Positions 9,321 to 33,955 of a stretch of 64,000 nt of DNA are shown piece after piece. Made by a program: the position numbers and the translations under genes. Source of the DNA: Vitrella brassicaformis CCMP3155 (taxonomy: Eukaryota > Protista > Chromerida); NCBI GenBank assembly GCA_001179505.1, contig CDMY01000254.1, positions 62,001-126,000 on the forward strand, given 5' to 3'. The notes below the pieces were generated by a model, which saw nothing but the letters and a program-made list of their open reading frames with translations, was not told the DNA's origin and made no database searches. Positions within the stretch are counted from its first letter, which is position 1. Every line of letters begins with the position of its first letter.

Positions 9321-9398
9321 GAAAAACTGAGGTAGGGTAAATGATGTGACTTTGGCGTTAGAGCACGTTGAACCTTGCACAAAACTGACTCGAGGCAC

Positions 9399-10468
9399 AT
9401 GATTCGGAATTCGTTTTTCGCATCAGCTGCTGTATTGTCTTCTTGGGGGATCCTCCTCATGTTTATGACTCTCTGGCGATATCGAAGAACCCCGGCCATT
9501 GCAGACGAAGGAAGATCCAGCAGCAAGCGTGTCCCCCTTTCTGGTTTCCTTTCAGAGCGTGGTGATGAGAGAAGTTCGTGGCTTCCTCCAGTTCTTCTCT
9601 CCTCGATTGCTGATGGTCGAGGATTAATTGTCCTGACGACAACCAACTGCGGCATGGTGAGAGTTGGAACAGATTTTTGTTTGCAATGGCGAAATTCCCT
9701 CACGTCTTCGCTCCCGCCTATCAGGTCGACTTTGCCGTCAATTGGGCCAGGAGTGTCCAGAGACAGGGGATTGAAAACTTCCTGATTATCTGCCTCGACG
9801 ACAAATGTATGGAGATTCTAGTGCAGGTGTTCCCCCGCAATGTAGCCCGGGCTCCATCTGAGAGACAGCTTTCAGGGACCACTGTTGGGGCGGCAAAGCA
9901 TGGAAGCACAGGCTTTGCGGCTGTCGTTCAGACGAGACCCTTTTATATTCGGGAAGTGCTATCGAGGGGCTTCTCCGTCCTCTATAACGATGTTGATATC
10001 GTGTGGAGGAGGAGTGTTCTCCCATACATCGATGACAGCTATGATATGGCGGTCCAAATCGATAATACCGACCCAACGGACTATTGCACATGCATTATTT
10101 TCTTTCGGCCGACAGCGGCTTCTATCGTACTCGTGGATCGGTGGCAACAGATTATGAACGGCAACACGAACCCAAGAAAGAAGTCGTCGCGTCTCAATCA
10201 ACCATCGTTCAATCGAGCGATAAGGGAGATGAAGGGGAAGATGAAAATGAGGGTTCTTCCTCGGACACAGTTTCCTCCAGGCCGATACTTCTTCAATACG
10301 TCATACTCTCTTCCCACACATTCTTTGAGCCCATCAAAACGTGATGAGGTGGTCTGTGTGCATGCCAACTGGATGAAGGGTGCTGACGTGAAGCAAGACC
10401 AGCTGAGAAAGCATCAATTATGGGATGTTGACACAGGCCTGTCCAGTACATGTCTGCAGACTCGATGA
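9399..10468 (+). CDS. Nucleotide-diphospho-sugar transferase (GT77-like), type II membrane, paralog A
   Basis: N-terminal hydrophobic anchor. One intron (about 9657-9724) at TTNCGM|VDFAVNWA. Motifs VLYNDVDIVW (DxD), YCTCIIFFRPT, NQPSFN, FPPG and VHANWMKG. Confidence 0.85.
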
Positions 10469-15735: not shown

Positions 15736-16709
15736 TCATTTGCATTCAGGGAGAATCATCGATTGTGGCACTCGCCATAGCCCGAAGCGTCTGAGTCGTT
15801 TCTTCTTTTTAACATGGCCTCTCACCCAGTTGGCGTGTACTACAACTACTTCGCTTCTCTGCTGGTTGCTCATTCGGTTGAAATACACATAGCCAGGGGG
15901 GAAGCGCTTGATAGGGCTGAGAATGTGTACAGACAGACCTTCTTGCAGCCTTTTGGCAGCCCGGTTGAACCCAGCTTGATTCTTGTTCTCTGCCTTCATC
16001 TCCTCTTCCCATACGTCGAGCAGCCTGAGGGAGTTCCTCGTGGGCCGAATCGCGAAAAAGCACGTGCACAAGTTCAGACTCTGGTCAGTCTTCCGAACGT
16101 CGTTCTGCACGACGAGGTCCTTGTCTCCGGGGAGAAAGGGTAATGGATTTTTCTGCCAGATCATGTCGACGTCACTGTACAAGGCAGTGTAGCCTTGTTG
16201 AAGGATCTCGCGAACAAAGAACGACCGCTTCTTGACAAGAGCACCGAAGCCCTCGCTGTTGAACGCGGATGCAGTCGTCGATATCATATTGTTCATCGTG
16301 GGTCCCTTGACAATGTGGTCTCCGTAATGGAGGTGGAGGTGCTTGAAACACGCGTTATCGCGGCAAATTATGATCCAATTGTGAATGTCGAGCTGCGACA
16401 GACTGATAGCCCAGTTGATAGCGAAATCGGCCTGCAGCTCAGAGACACGACATCAAGTATAACGCAACTTACCCGTTTACGACCCACCATGCCACAGTTC
16501 ACAGTTGTGAAGATAATCAATCTGCGAGAATCGGCAATTGATGAAAGCAGGTATGGAGAGAGCCAGTCAGAGGTGAAGTTCGAAGAGGACTTGTCGTCTG
16601 CGGTCCCCCCCTTGAGTGTGACTCCTAGCAACTTCTTCAGGGCGTCGTATGAAGCAAGCAGAAGTATGAATGCAAGGGCCGCAAAAATGAGGACACGTTT
16701 TAACGTCAT
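15736..16709 (-). CDS. Nucleotide-diphospho-sugar transferase (GT77-like), type II membrane, paralog B
   Basis: Anchor MTLKRVLIFAALAFILLLAS. Intron at TVNCGM|ADFAINWA. Motifs ALYSDVDMIW, LCTCFFAIRPT, NQAGFN, FPPG and VHANWVRG. Confidence 0.88.
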
Positions 16710-20055: not shown

Positions 20056-20483
20056 TAAATGCCTGGTAAGCGCAATTTGGATCGACAACTCAATGACATA
20101 ATCGATAATCAATGTGTCACAATCATATTTGTGCAGCGGCAGCCAGCACCCGTTAACAAGCAAGCCATCGAGATTTGCCTATAGCATGCATTGAATAAAA
20201 TTTCTTTCGCTTTCGTCAGCGGTCACGCCAAATGACACCTGTCAAAACGCCAGAAATGCCACGCAAAATACTGCGGTTGCACTGAATTCGCTAAATCCTT
20301 CTGAAAAGGACGGGCTTGCCTGTCTCCGCTGTCCACGCCAAGACAATCGAATCCTAGTAAGTCCTCAATACCCCCTTATTATCTGAGTCCCCCCCCCCCC
20401 TTGCACACTCTTCTGAAACACGTAGTAAACCTAAGAAGACCTTGTCTCCTGACAGCACGCCAATTCAGACTGCAAGCAAAAAC

Positions 20484-23400
20484 TCACAAGCGAAGACGCA
20501 TAGCCACTTTAGTCACCTGGTTTTGGAATGTCGAGTGACCATGCAATAATGATACCACGTCGTTGTCCCACAACCGATGTTTTATCAAGGCCCTTTTCTT
20601 CGACTCACGACCTAATACCCAATTGACATGCACTATTACCACATCCTTCCGCTCCTCCCGTGTCAGAGACTCAGAGGGACGTCCGCGTCGCGTCTTCAAA
20701 AACACAGGACCTGCGGAACACGAAAGTATCCCAAAGACTGTTTCGAAAGACTCCTAACCTGATGGAAAAAATGCCGGAGAGAGACTTGCGATAGACACGC
20801 TGTTTCTCAGGTTTTTAACGGCTTCCTTCAGATATGGATTATTGTAAGTAATGTTGCGTCTTGTCTCCCTGTGCATCAGCTGCTCCCACTGATTGAGCAG
20901 AGAAAGCGCCCCCTCTGTTGGCCGAAACAACATCAGACACGAACAGAAATTAACCACGTCGATCTGGAGGGCGACGTCGAATCGCCTGGATGGCATATAC
21001 TCCAGCGCGTTCCTCAGCCACACCATGTCAACATCGTTGTACAGGACTGTGTAGCCTCTTTGGAGAATCTCGCGGACGAAGAATGGCCTCGTCATGACAA
21101 GAGCCCCGAACGACTCCGTGTTGAATATTGTGGCAGCCGCAGAGACACGCACCTCCTTCGGCGCGCGGACCACATTGTTGGGAAGGCTTTGAGACAGAAG
21201 ATCGAAGCATCCGTCGTCGAGGCAAACGATCAGGAAACTGCTAGCGCCTTGCCTCTGGAGGCTCTTTGCCCAGTTGATGGCGAAATCGACCTGCAAAGCA
21301 GAGGCCCCAGGTGGATGTCAAGACACTGAGACAAGTAAGTGTGAATGGCTAACCATGCCGTTGTTGACGGTCGTCATGACGATTGTGCCATCAGCATTAG
21401 CAACCGAAGATAGCAGGTCAGAGGAAAGCCACCCAGTTGAGGCCGGCATTGTCGTGCCGCTTCTCTTTTCACCAATTTCCCGTCCCTCTAGGTGACGTAC
21501 TTGCGCCGAGCACGAGTCAAGTGCATCTGCGTGCCGGCACCACATCCAGCAGTCGTTGCCCCCTTCTTTCCCCTTGCGCAGCACGACACCCCACATCGGA
21601 CCGAAGAGGCCCTCTGGGGAGCAGTCCGGCTGCTGCATCACAGGGATGACGTCGTGGATGTCGACGAGCTGACTGCACTGGAAGAGCCTCAAGAAGGCCG
21701 CAACGGCCTCCGTCCTGTTGGGTGGCAGCTTGACGGCAGAAGAAGAGCCGAACGGGCGGTAGGTGCCGCTGGGCAGGAGGAAGGCAGCGTAGCCGTTGGG
21801 ACGCAGGACCCTCTCCACCTCTGTCAAAAAGACACGCACACACGCACAAACGCAAAAATGAAGGCGATTGAAGGGTGACTCACCGGCAGCGTAGTGGAAT
21901 GTACAGTCTATGCGGTTGAAGACCTTGGCAAAGACAAAGTCGAAGGAGTCGTCTTTGAAGGGCAAGTCGTGCAAATCGCCCCTGACCACCAGTGGAGGCC
22001 TCTCCACCAGATCGACACCAATGGCGTACCGCACGCCGGCTTGGTACAATGCCCGCACCTCTTCCCCTGTTGACGCGCCAATGCTGAGGGCATGCGAGTC
22101 GCGCGTGATGTAGCCGGCAGACCAATAGCGATCAAACAATCGCACATGCATGTACCTACACCAACCACAGAAGTCAACACCTCGAGACAAAGAAGCGGCG
22201 TGCATACCTTATCCACTCGAGCATATCGACGGAGAGCTGTCCTGAAACGTCTTGCCCATCTGAAGCGCTTCTTCTGATGTAGGCGCCGTTCTCCTGTGTT
22301 GCGACGGATTCATTGTACGCCCTTCCATTCGCGAACGAACTGGCGTGGCTGCTGAGGGCAGACTGACACGTTTCCGTTGTATTTCGCGCTGCTTCCCGGC
22401 CGATGCTCTGCCGTTGGTTCAGTGGGAGGGAATCCATGATAAAGCAGCTGTCATTGGCGACACTGGGGCGCACGAGACGCTGAGCAACAAAGGAAGGCGT
22501 TTCTTGTGGACTCGTCTTTCGCTTGTCCGCCGTCCATATGTTTAAGCACTCGTCGGCCGCATCGTCGAGGTCGTGCGAAGCTGACATATTCCTAAGGAGA
22601 GGCGAGCCATTGGTGCGATGCTCTAATCTGCTATATCCCCAGCTGACCTTTGGGCAAAGTCAGTATGGAGAATATCAAGGAGGTCCAGCACGGGCCACTC
22701 TGAGACAAACAAGACATGCCAGCCGGCCAGCCAAGGCAGCAACAGCTAGCTCACCTGTGCTCAGTAAGGTCCGCAGAGGGATCTGCCTGATGATGTCTCT
22801 CAACGGATCCACGAGAATATCTCTCCTGTCGACATTTTGAATCATGGCTGCCGAGATGAGGGCCAGCGGGCACTTGTTGAAATAGCGAGAGGCGTCTTCG
22901 AGAAAGAGAGACACACTCTGCCTTTGAGCAACCAGATCCTCTGTGGGCCTCCGTGTACCTTTGGGGACCTCTTGGAGGAGTCGAGCCGCCTCATTTGCGC
23001 GCTCTTGCAGAAGGGCCGCTGGCGGCTGGCCACCATTGATTTGCTCTTGCCATGTGCTTACCAGTTCCATGAGAGAGCCGTGGAACGCTCGGAGTGCTGA
23101 AAAGTGGTGAAAGAGAGGACAGTCATACGAGTCAAGATCAGGAAGGCCCTCTTTCAACAGAGCAAGCATCCTTAACAAGAGAAAGAATACAAATGAGGGA
23201 AGACATCTGGCCCTCTGCGCTGACCTGAGAATCGGCCATGTTGTATTGAGTATGTGGGAAGCGAGACCCAACTTGTCGTACATCTCGTCGAGCTCAGCCA
23301 GGGTGTGGGACATGTACTGCTCGAGGGACGCGATGACAGCGTCATTCTGGGGCGGATGGACGGCAAAGAACAGGCGTGCCACGAAGACAACCACATAGCT

Positions 23401-23685
23401 GTCGGGTTCCCGTGACAGCGAGTTCCAGTCTGTTGACTCGACTTGCCGCAAAATCTTCGCACTTTCTCTTGCTGCGCATCGAAGGGACAGTTCTGTGTCA
23501 GCGAAATCAACAGCCTCTGATCGGATGTCAGCCTGATGACGGGCTCTACTGTGTTCCGGTCGCGAGGCTCGGTTGGGAAACAGCAGCTGGAGATGATCGT
23601 GGAGGAGTGAAACACGGAGAGATTGGTTGGCGCATGACGCCAGGGCTGCAGTGACGAGGACCACTCCGAGTTTGGCATACATCAT
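20484..23685 (-). CDS. Multidomain secretory-pathway protein: signal anchor + unknown helical domain + class I SAM methyltransferase + GT77 glycosyltransferase (paralog C)
   Basis: All junctions splice in frame with GT-AG introns: LSTE|WPVLD, FAQR|NMSASHD, LEWIR|YMHVRLFD, HYAA|EVERVLRP, TVNNGM|VDFAINWA and FPSG|PVFLK. MTase motif ALSIGASTGEEVRALYQAGVRYAIGVDLVERPPLVVRGDLHDLPFKDDSFDFVF. GT77 motifs VLYNDVDMVW, FCSCLMLFRPT and VHVNWVLG. Confidence 0.8.
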
Positions 23686-32005: not shown

Positions 32006-32108
32006 CTCAGCCTGTGTGACCAATGTGAATTTGTGTAGGCGCATGCTAATTAATGTGTGCTGACGGTCTGTTGGGCCTGTTGGTTGTTGCTGACGGTCTG
32101 ATTTTAAT

Positions 32109-33955
32109 TCATCGCCAAACATAACCCATGTCCACGTCTCTGGCGTGCGCAGCATACCGGCACAGATGGCACGCGCTGTGGGGGCTGTTGAGCTCCAACA
32201 ACTCGTAGAAGGCCCGAGAGGGGCCGACCTGATGCGAGAAAATAGCGCAGCTTCTCATGCTTTCCTTCCTGTACCCTTTTCCATTCCAGATATTCGTCGT
32301 ATTCATCGTCATGATTGTTGAGGTAGGACAGATAGTCGGCCAAGGCCTGTGAACAGAATCGAGGCTGCCTTCCTCTGTCCTGTCGATTTGTCCTGTCAAT
32401 GCAGGCCCGTCTGTACCTTGGGCGATGCGAAGTCTTCCGCGACGACGTAGCTGTGCGGATGGGGGGCGAAGAGGTGGTAGTTGTTCTTTCGCGACTTGAC
32501 GATGGGCACGGTGCCGGCAGCCAGCGCAATCCCAAACTTCTCGGTGACGTAGTCAGGCGTGTCACTGTTCTCGAGCGCCAGATGGAACTTGAATGTCCTG
32601 ATGAGCTCCATCTTCTCACGACAGTTGCGCAGCACGTCCTGCAGTGACCTGTTCCTTTTCCGCATTCTTTCGTGTGAGTCGGGCATTGGCTCGTCCATGT
32701 AGTCGCTCGCTTTCGCATTGTTGAGGCACTGGCCGAACGAATGGATGAACACGTGCTTGCCCAGCTCTTTCATGTATCTCAGGCGACCATTCCTTTCACG
32801 CGAACAAGACAGAAAAATCTCTGCCTTGCGTTGGGTGTTTTTCTCTGTATCTCACTTGTCTTTCTTTCCGCAGTTTGACACGACGAGGCTGACAAGACGA
32901 TCCTTCCTCTTGGCCCGTGGAGGCGTCATCCAGTGGAAGCTGAATATAGTCAGAGGTCACAAGAAAGAGACGATCATTGAGTTTTGGCTAACTCCAGAAA
33001 TGTCTCAGGGTTCAGTCGGTCGTGTCCCAGGTAGATTCTCGGCACGTCGCTGTCGAGATGATACGTGGCCTTCAGGTCGAATTTCCTGTCTCAAACGAAG
33101 GGAAGCAATCATGTTTATTGCCATGCCGTTAGCCTCTGCTTACTTGAGATATTCCGGCCGGCTTAGGTCTGGAAACAGAGTGGAAGGCTCCATCGAACTC
33201 AGTGCAAAGTGCTGAGCAAAATTACTTAGAAGGTTACAGACTGTCTACAGATCTTCTCACCTGGTGTGACTTTTTTGCACCCTGCGCAACGAGAGTGTCG
33301 ACTTCAGAGCCTTGATTGAACGAAAACAACACTAAATCGGCTGTCCCATTCCACAAAAACTGCCTGCAGCGAACACCCCTTCATATTATTCTTGCCAGTT
33401 CTTTCCACCTGACCTTTCTTTGGTGAGGTGGCAGGGCACGTCACACGGCATCCGTCTATCCTCGAGATAGCTCCCTATCCCCCGCCTTGTTCCCCATTCC
33501 AACAGCCACACAGGACGTGACTCAGTCACCGTGTAAAACTCCCATGATTTTTTACTGCTCAAACCGCTGAGCGGCGGCGGCCTTTCCCCGGCAGCGATAG
33601 CCTTGGCATCGCTGCACTTGTATCGGTAATCAAAGTAGTCGACCCACCGATGACGGCGAGGCCGGCGAGGATCACTCGGATCCAGGCGGTTCACCTTCGA
33701 ACGGCCTGGCAAAGCGGGAAGTGTCGGTTGCTGACCATGGACGAAAGGCAATGGATGAAACGGACGGGGAAGGTGTCGCGAACACTCAGGCAGGCGGTCC
33801 TCCCTTAATAGGTCTTGTCTAAGCTGGCGGTACCGCAACGACGGGTAGATCCGTAGAAGATGAGCAGAAAAGGGGATAAGCAGCGACGCAATCAGAGCCG
33901 CGACCAAAAGGACTGCCGGAGGAGGAGCTCCGCGCATTTTCGAGGGTAAGGGCAT
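32109..33955 (-). CDS. Alpha-1,3/4-fucosyltransferase (GT10), type II membrane
   Basis: Anchor PPPAVLLVAALIASLLIPF. Exons LSSMEP, ATYHLDSDVP, LVVSNC and HSFGQCLNN, the alpha-1,3 motif FKFHLALENSDTPDYVTEKFGIALAAGTVPIV, and DFASPK|ALADYLSYLNNHDDEYDEYLEWK. Confidence 0.92.

Follow-up and report, generated by a model that had tools for sequence, protein, structure and literature searches.

The chlorovirus PBCV-1 protein A064R itself adds the terminal sugar that its methyltransferase has been shown to methylate at O-2; most PBCV-1 glycosyltransferases are predicted to be soluble and cytoplasmic, and A064R is not among the two named exceptions (PMC9614988). In plants, RGXT1-4 are the GT77 xylosyltransferases of rhamnogalacturonan II (RG-II), the xylose that they add occurs as 2-O-methyl-xylose, and a 2025 review reports that no RG-II O-methyltransferase had been identified (PMC12168206). 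The GT77 proteins RRA and XEG113 are arabinosyltransferases, the O-glycans of Chlamydomonas are finished by methylation of arabinose and galactose, and, according to a 2020 review, none of the enzymes that methylate microalgal N- and O-glycans had been characterised (PMC7773692). For the secretory pathway of eukaryotes, few glycan O-methyltransferases are known. We describe here a gene on the minus strand of a 64,000-nucleotide stretch of the genome of the chromerid Vitrella brassicaformis CCMP3155 (contig CDMY01000254.1, positions 62,001 to 126,000; hereafter "the window", in whose numbering coordinates are given unless another locus is named) that encodes a class I S-adenosylmethionine (SAM) methyltransferase and a GT77 glycosyltransferase on one polypeptide. 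The account that we favour as a whole, with confidence slightly better than even, is that this is an expressed fusion gene whose GT77 part originated by duplication and whose product would carry out luminal sugar transfer and glycan O-methylation.

A mechanical list of open reading frames (ORFs) splits this single gene (20431-23685) into five pieces. Contigs of the cDNA-like sequencing run X1, which are only 176-470 nt long, contain eight joints in the region, with CT..AC ends on the plus strand (GT..AG on the minus strand); none of the eight is present in the DNA runs X2-X4, whose listed contigs are unspliced through at least three of these introns. The frame that results from the X1 joints is open throughout, an in-frame stop codon lies directly upstream of the ATG at 23685, and the 5' end is covered by an RNA contig (23320-23737). 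A ninth intron (23171-23224) lies outside the X1 contig coverage; we accept it because a paralogue (below) keeps it and both public gene models splice it out. A 935-aa model in which these nucleotides were read as coding was dropped after the paralogue comparison. The gene is expressed, and its ten exons and nine introns (coding sequence 23685-20431, minus strand) give one stop-free frame that encodes a single 917-aa polypeptide with both a methyltransferase and a GT77 domain.

An initial annotation of this DNA, made from its letters alone, had proposed that GT-AG introns join the ORFs in frame into one polypeptide with its domains in the order given below, and had named three stretches (22590-22770, 22160-22210 and 21300-21350) across which splicing could be checked. 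The eight RNA joints together with the inferred ninth intron bear out the in-frame joining, the single polypeptide and the domain order; the motifs quoted at the time (IGASTGEEV, GVDLVERPPLVVRGDLHDLPF, FDF and DVD) are all present in the final model. The details needed revision, however: the introns number nine and not about three, the gap at 22590-22770 consists of two introns around a 52-nt exon, and the position first taken as the C-terminal end, 20484, lies inside intron 9 (20470-20516), the coding sequence ending at 20431. A single intron at 22754-22623, considered as a candidate, is ruled out by the RNA, in which two introns flank the 52-nt exon. Immediately before the start codon, at 23697-23689, there is a three-codon upstream ORF (ATG ATG TAG); the paralogue has ATC ATC ATG at this place, and so no such ORF.

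The same structure is found at a second locus. The paralogue, public record P0151 (CEM11196.1, 789 aa), lies on another contig, is 81% identical and shares both the architecture and the intron positions. In an alignment of its locus (L001) with the window, all nine introns are at conserved positions and have GT..AG ends; the exon indels between the copies are all multiples of three (6, 36, 6, 6, 3 and 3), and the intron indels are not (1, 2, 2, 4, 1, 4 and 5). The ORFs are intact in both copies, and the ratio of nonsynonymous to synonymous substitution rates (dN/dS) between them is 0.44 overall and 0.30 in the GT77 part. The window gene itself is represented by P0166 (717 aa, "unnamed protein product"), which is the public model of this gene since it is 100% identical to the 917-aa model over the full length of P0166. 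It carries automatic PF08241 and PF03407 annotation and is truncated at both ends (window 23313-20759): it starts at Met125 and stops after exon 8, so that it is without the signal peptide and without the final two exons, where the GT77 His motif lies. Because these parts are absent, expression of the public model would probably yield an inactive and mislocalised protein. The public model of P0151 also lacks about 130 N-terminal residues, and both copies have coding sequence for the 124 N-terminal residues that the public models leave out. In the searches described below, P0166 and P0151 stood in for the 917-aa spliced model.

A further record, the transcript-derived P0001 (UniRef A0A7S1JMX1), runs from the C-terminal half of the methyltransferase through GT77 to the stop codon and is consistent with every splice junction that it spans. 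Some segments of P0001 are identical to the window gene and others to the paralogue; the record is probably a chimera made in assembly from two expressed copies, or else a product of gene conversion, and its mosaic make-up suggests that both copies are expressed.

The methyltransferase was recognised by a Pfam Methyltransf_11 match in the third ORF piece (21321-22205, E 2.4e-9), and P0166 matches this family (PF08241) over the full profile (1-95 of 95; 41.3 bits against a cut-off of 21.2, E 2.5e-10). AlphaFold (AF2) was run on the paralogue P0151, of which the methyltransferase alone was well modelled (predicted local distance difference test score, pLDDT, 90-98); the top Foldseek matches of this part are all SAM methyltransferases, the best being 3l8d (E 2e-9). 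When the domain is aligned with 49 homologues, the SAM-binding positions (G, G, E, D, GD.H and FDF) prove to be retained in both Vitrella copies, and G446, G450, E452, D465 and G476-D477-x-H479 fall in columns conserved in 44-49 of the 49. A PDB sequence search with the methyltransferase returned generic methyltransferases only, as did NCBIfam, where all matches were far under their cut-offs.

Homologues were sought with the methyltransferase ORF by HMMER against 1.84 billion representative proteins, and the statements about its relatives here and below concern the best 150 of 273 matches. Only two matches are close, both from V. brassicaformis CCMP3155; after these the best matches (E ~1e-16 to 1e-10) are short proteins. 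All named matches are uncharacterised land-plant proteins (Malus, Pyrus, Diphasiastrum, Ananas, Ginkgo, Adiantum, rice, Nyssa and Zizania), and two of them, P0006 (Malus) and P0007 (Diphasiastrum), have N-terminal membrane anchors, in agreement with the earlier remark that stand-alone proteins with this methyltransferase motif occur as uncharacterised plant type II membrane proteins. The Atlas structure neighbour of the domain is a Streptophyta cluster named "F21J9.14" (1092 members; template-modelling (TM) score 0.72). Among the longer homologues, the fusion partner is GT2 or GT4 in those of bacterial type, DUF7870 in those of plant type, or a further methyltransferase domain. Two close homologues, prokaryotic or viral, lie within glycan clusters. 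The gene for P0005 starts at the last base of an adjoining GT1/GT4-type gene, with an acetyltransferase, another glycosyltransferase and a TylF-type methyltransferase alongside, and P0012 is encoded among GT2, GT25, GT11, GT10, NodZ-like and GDP-sugar dehydratase/epimerase genes. Since homologues occur in glycan-synthesis clusters or fused to GT2 or GT4, their gene contexts support a putative role of the methyltransferase family in glycan O-methylation.

The metagenomic region that encodes P0012 (L075/L076/L077, 580-16170) is a glycan run of about 20 genes that includes DUF268 besides the kinds just named; it is bordered by dUTPase and PhoH genes, a pairing seen in large phages or viruses. The Arabidopsis gene At4g01240, near the RGXT genes, encodes an uncharacterised SAM methyltransferase according to its annotation, which is all that the papers confirm; it may belong to the present family and is not used as evidence here. 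Within the methyltransferase region of the window, contigs of X1, X2 and X3 match ~21978-22157 with 2-3 differences and then diverge at 21978, and the diverging letters encode the tail of a 103-aa fragment (P0002, JGI/IMG). These contigs point to a third, possibly truncated methyltransferase copy, or to a copy with an extra intron.

The GT77 domain was matched by Pfam Nucleotid_trans/GT77 (PF03407) in the fourth ORF piece (20757-21296, E 5e-23), with 82.5 bits on the exon piece against a cut-off of 22, 78.1 on P0166 and 89.4 on P0151 (profile positions 3-205 of 208). We aligned it with 25 other GT77 sequences, namely three references and 22 from metagenome loci. Its DxD motif reads YNDVDMVW (aa 747-754), and D-V-D is present in 25 of the 25 others; the C-terminal His block, VHVNW (aa 868-872), is in exon 9, is absent from P0166, and has its His in 23 of the 25. 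Of the residues invariant in GT77, the window copy retains DVD, W, D, D, W, H, G, K and W. The nearest structural cluster of the domain bears the automatic name RGXT-like (TM 0.82), whereas in language-model features the GT77 clusters closest to the domain are those of haptophytes and giant viruses; a PDB sequence search gave no solved GT77 relative.

From its N-terminus, the protein consists of a signal peptide, an orphan helical region, a linker, the methyltransferase, a Cys-containing linker (aa 601-650) and the GT77 domain (aa ~651-905). The initial annotation had called the N-terminus a signal anchor; a cleavable signal peptide is more likely, because a hydropathy scan gives a hydrophobic core of only ~11 residues. 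The signal peptide is kept in the second copy (MMYAKLGVVLVTAALASCA in the window gene, MMHAKLGVVLIIGALGSCVCA in the paralogue, projected via the alignment). An apparent internal hydrophobic segment at aa 159-179 is intron-derived sequence, and no internal membrane span is left after its removal, so that both catalytic domains should lie on the same side of the membrane. AF2 predicts the orphan region as all helices at modest confidence (pLDDT mostly 45-80), and this region has no Pfam family, no relatives by Atlas features and structural TM scores of 0.34 at most.

The window also holds two stand-alone GT77 genes, A and B, that lie 4-11 kb from the fusion gene. Paralogue B begins with a ~16-residue hydrophobic stretch, paralogue A is also hydrophobic near its N-terminus, and both retain NQxxFN. 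Because the fusion and the stand-alone GT77s share a stem, WL...LLSS(I/V)A, a block, TT.N.GMV, and an intron right after GMV, the fused GT77 module appears to have arisen by local duplication, with paralogue A as the likely donor type. Such an origin would have a duplicate of a neighbouring stand-alone GT77 lose its membrane anchor and join behind a glycan-associated methyltransferase, the anchor being replaced by the signal peptide, the helical region and the methyltransferase.

If these features are read together, GT77 in the lumen of the secretory pathway would take a sugar from a nucleotide sugar, with DVD and His as its metal site, and add it to a glycan of the wall or of a glycoprotein; the methyltransferase domain would O-methylate this glycan with SAM. 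That the protein adds a sugar and O-methylates it, possibly terminating chains, had been proposed at the outset; the gene contexts support a glycan role of the methyltransferase family, but the loss of invariant residues in both catalytic domains weakens the proposal for the window copy. Several observations weigh against sugar transfer and methylation by this protein in the lumen. The GT77 motif DQxxFN reads NNPYLK in the window copy, although its Q and its N are each present in 25 of 25 other sequences; both are retained in the paralogue (NQSYLN). In the methyltransferase, both copies have Ser where the family has Arg (43/49; G-A-R-x-G), and Arg in place of the His (45/49) in N..DH, the motif that follows strand 4. 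The window copy goes further, with Asn (44/49) replaced by Lys, Asp (45/49) by Asn and Pro (42/49) by Thr. In this same part dN/dS reaches 0.69 (dS is low there), the AlphaFold check left the GT77 part of the model at low confidence while upholding the methyltransferase fold, and a chromerid signal peptide could also be the start of a plastid-targeting leader.

Since invariant residues are changed in both domains, the window copy may have altered or weakened activity, and the paralogue, judged by its motifs, is the better candidate for a full two-step enzyme. A stronger form of this idea is that the window copy is an impaired or re-specialised duplicate, serving as a non-catalytic partner, as a binding module or with a new donor or acceptor, and that CEM11196.1 keeps the ancestral two-step activity. 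We hold this to be unlikely, though deserving of serious weight. The changes sit within DQxxFN of GT77 and within the methyltransferase motif that follows strand 4, and dN/dS is 0.69 in the methyltransferase part; they are not sequencing errors, since at the changed sites the window agrees exactly with the DNA and RNA contigs. Where at least 75% of relatives share a residue, the window copy has five derived changes and the paralogue none; this 5:0 split is suggestive, but statistically not significant (separate tests, p = 0.25-0.5). The window ORF is moreover intact and expressed, it is under purifying selection overall, and DVD, the His motif and all SAM-binding positions are retained. The Arg to Ser and His to Arg changes are common to both copies, so that some of the divergence is older than the duplication and may stem from a mechanism peculiar to the lineage. 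The last of these changes, in the N..DH motif, can also be taken to mean that each domain is active on a target of its own, the methyltransferase acting on another residue of the same polymer, on a carboxyl group or on something other than a glycan, with no transfer-and-cap reaction. The fold gives no specificity, since the Foldseek matches span methyltransferases of every substrate class, and the weakness of the NCBIfam matches agrees with this. Against such separate targets, the relatives that were examined lie in glycan clusters, several long ones are fused to glycosyltransferases, and fusion usually couples steps of a single pathway; we consider this explanation distinctly improbable. Finally, the two domains might belong to different proteins, and the fusion might be an artefact that arose in assembly, in gene prediction or by read-through, as no single read or contig spans the whole mRNA and the contigs cannot show transcript ends. 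The frame is open over every RNA-supported joint, including the inter-domain joint 21288>21352, the inter-domain linker lies inside an RNA contig (21365-21703), the second locus has the same structure, and P0001 joins both domains in one transcript-derived ORF; we therefore regard an artefact as very improbable indeed. The reading of an expressed fusion whose product would transfer a sugar and O-methylate the glycan is the one that we carry forward; the coordinates of its parts, and of the two stand-alone GT77 genes, are given in Table 1.

Table 1. Positions in the window of the fusion gene, its introns, predicted domains and motifs, and of the neighbouring GT77 genes.
Feature	Position	Strand	Evidence
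Whole coding region, 10 exons, 917 aa	20431..23685	-	ATG at 23685, stop 20433-20431; RNA joints and one inferred intron
Probable signal peptide MMYAKLGVVLVTAALASCA, aa 1-19	23629..23685	-	Hydropathy scan, paralogue alignment, RNA contig
Orphan region, predicted all-helical, aa ~20-288, exons 1-4	22648..23628	-	No Pfam family; AF2
Intron 1, 54 nt, inferred	23171..23224	-	GT..AG kept in paralogue, 1- and 2-nt indels inside; both public models
Intron 2, 63 nt	22896..22958	-	X1 joint 22895>22959
Intron 3, 55 nt	22700..22754	-	RNA joint 22699>22755
Intron 4, 56 nt	22592..22647	-	RNA joint 22590>22647, cut +1
Exon 5, Ser/Asn-rich linker, aa 289-416	22208..22591	-	No Pfam family; AF2 pLDDT <50
Intron 5, 52 nt	22156..22207	-	RNA joint 22152>22205, cut +3
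Class I SAM methyltransferase domain, aa ~417-600, interrupted by intron 6	21560..22155	-	Pfam Methyltransf_11, AF2, Foldseek, family alignment
Methyltransferase motifs IGASTGEEV; GVDLV; RGDLHDLPF; FDFVFAKVFNR	22082-22056; 22019-22005; 21983-21957; 21944-21912	-	
Intron 6, 63 nt, in frame, within methyltransferase domain	21821..21883	-	RNA joint 21820>21884
Intron 7, 63 nt, between linker/GT77 start and GT77 core	21291..21353	-	RNA joint 21288>21352, cut +2; 4-nt indel in paralogue
GT77 module, aa ~635-905	20517..21440	-	Pfam Nucleotid_trans; alignment with 25 other GT77
GT77 motifs: stem WLSSDLLSSVA; DVD; NNPYLK (degenerate DQxxFN); HVNW	21440-21399; within 21041-21018; 20846-20826; within 20639-20610	-	
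Intron 8, 48 nt	20711..20758	-	RNA joint 20708>20757, cut +2
Intron 9, 47 nt	20470..20516	-	RNA joint 20469>20517
Stand-alone GT77 paralogue A: signal anchor, stem, GT77	9375..10468	+	tblastn 42% identity; Pfam E 3.5e-31
Stand-alone GT77 paralogue B: signal anchor, stem, GT77	15736..16709	-	tblastn 40% identity; Pfam E 5.3e-29

At the second locus, the paralogue is followed by a GT64 and a GT61 gene (L001 13639-14939 and 18282-19681), so both copies are in glycosyltransferase-rich neighbourhoods. A sub-threshold match to a GT10 fucosyltransferase is present in the window at 32107-32718 on the minus strand (E 6.5e-4; 19.8 bits against a cut-off of 23.9).

Is the pairing of GT77 with a methyltransferase found elsewhere? 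From the methyltransferase side, no other PF03407 fusion was found in 20 scanned proteins (P0001, the 18 longest other matches, and P0167, which came from a word-based search). From the GT77 side, word-based searches with whole P0151, with its GT77 region and with P0001:165-438 returned Vitrella proteins and one weak GT77 only, a blank that is weak in itself since these searches require shared 5-residue words; a scan of viral contigs with the GT77 alignment gave no relatives, and the hidden Markov model of the methyltransferase family had no match in 70 metagenome GT77 loci (21-50% identity over the best segment), many of whose contigs are 1-3 kb long. Provisionally, then, the pairing is unique to Vitrella, the sensitivity of the GT77-side searches being limited. 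The initial annotation knew of no such combination in a eukaryotic Golgi protein; the pairing was indeed not found outside Vitrella, but it was already public and automatically annotated with both domains (P0166 and P0151). The architecture is nevertheless undiscussed, as we found no paper on this protein or on Vitrella glycan synthesis, and glycosyltransferase-methyltransferase fusions as such are known.

The fusion and the glycan clusters around the prokaryotic relatives of the methyltransferase together single out one family of candidates, open to testing in Vitrella as well as in plants. In its boldest form, which we rate as a long shot, the fusion would act as a "Rosetta stone" that ties GT77 to a ~1000-member uncharacterised land-plant methyltransferase family, and this family would contain the missing glycan O-methyltransferases of the secretory pathway. 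If that were true, its members would be candidates for the enzymes of RG-II 2-O-methyl-xylose and for the methylators of algal O- and N-glycans. The two paralogues, which differ at invariant residues of catalytic motifs, also offer a natural comparison for structure-function work.

Among known systems, the nearest named relatives of the methyltransferase domain are the uncharacterised "F21J9.14" land-plant proteins (P0006, Malus; P0007, Diphasiastrum; P0038, rice), at E 1e-14 to 1e-10 and 43-52% identity over ~75 residues, with which it shares the succession G-A-x-x-G-x-E ... G-x-D-L ... PP-x-V ... GD-x-H ... FDF. These plant proteins are ~250-300 aa long and carry no glycosyltransferase domain in those examined, though some have DUF7870. 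The Vitrella protein departs from this type in that it is not a short protein with an N-terminal type II anchor, its methyltransferase domain being internal (aa 417-600), and in its N-x-x-D-H motif: both copies lack the family R and H and the window copy also N and D, so that the motif reads K..NR in the window copy and N..DR in the paralogue. The GT77 domain is like those of plants in its Pfam Nucleotid_trans match, its DVD and its C-terminal His, and differs in that the window copy is without the invariant Q and N; no methyltransferase fusion is reported for RGXT, RRA or XEG113. Like the Vitrella fusion, the bacterial proteins P0020, P0048, P0066 and P0102 have Methyltransf_11 on one chain with a glycosyltransferase, in their case GT2 or GT4; Atlas clusters of phage or bacterial GT-A proteins with methyltransferases have scores below 0.9 and serve as leads only. 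The prokaryotic and viral fusions involve GT2, GT4, GT34 and Mannosyl_trans3, and GT77 in none.

The likeness to WbdD of Escherichia coli O9a, named as a precedent in the initial annotation, consists only in the idea that methylation may cap a glycan chain. WbdD is a kinase-methyltransferase with a coiled-coil ruler and is not known to have a glycosyltransferase domain, and Pfam scans of P0151 and P0166 revealed no kinase domain. A parallel exists with A064R, compared here by architecture only: each combines, in one polypeptide, a class I SAM methyltransferase and a retaining GT-A-type glycosyltransferase that bears a DXD motif. A064R is viral, has two glycosyltransferase (rhamnosyltransferase) domains, the first of them GT34-like, and carries its methyltransferase last, whereas in the Vitrella protein a signal peptide and a large orphan region come first, and the methyltransferase stands ahead of a single GT77. 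The two-step reaction that we propose for it, in which one domain would add a sugar and the other would O-methylate the glycan, resembles that of A064R by this analogy.

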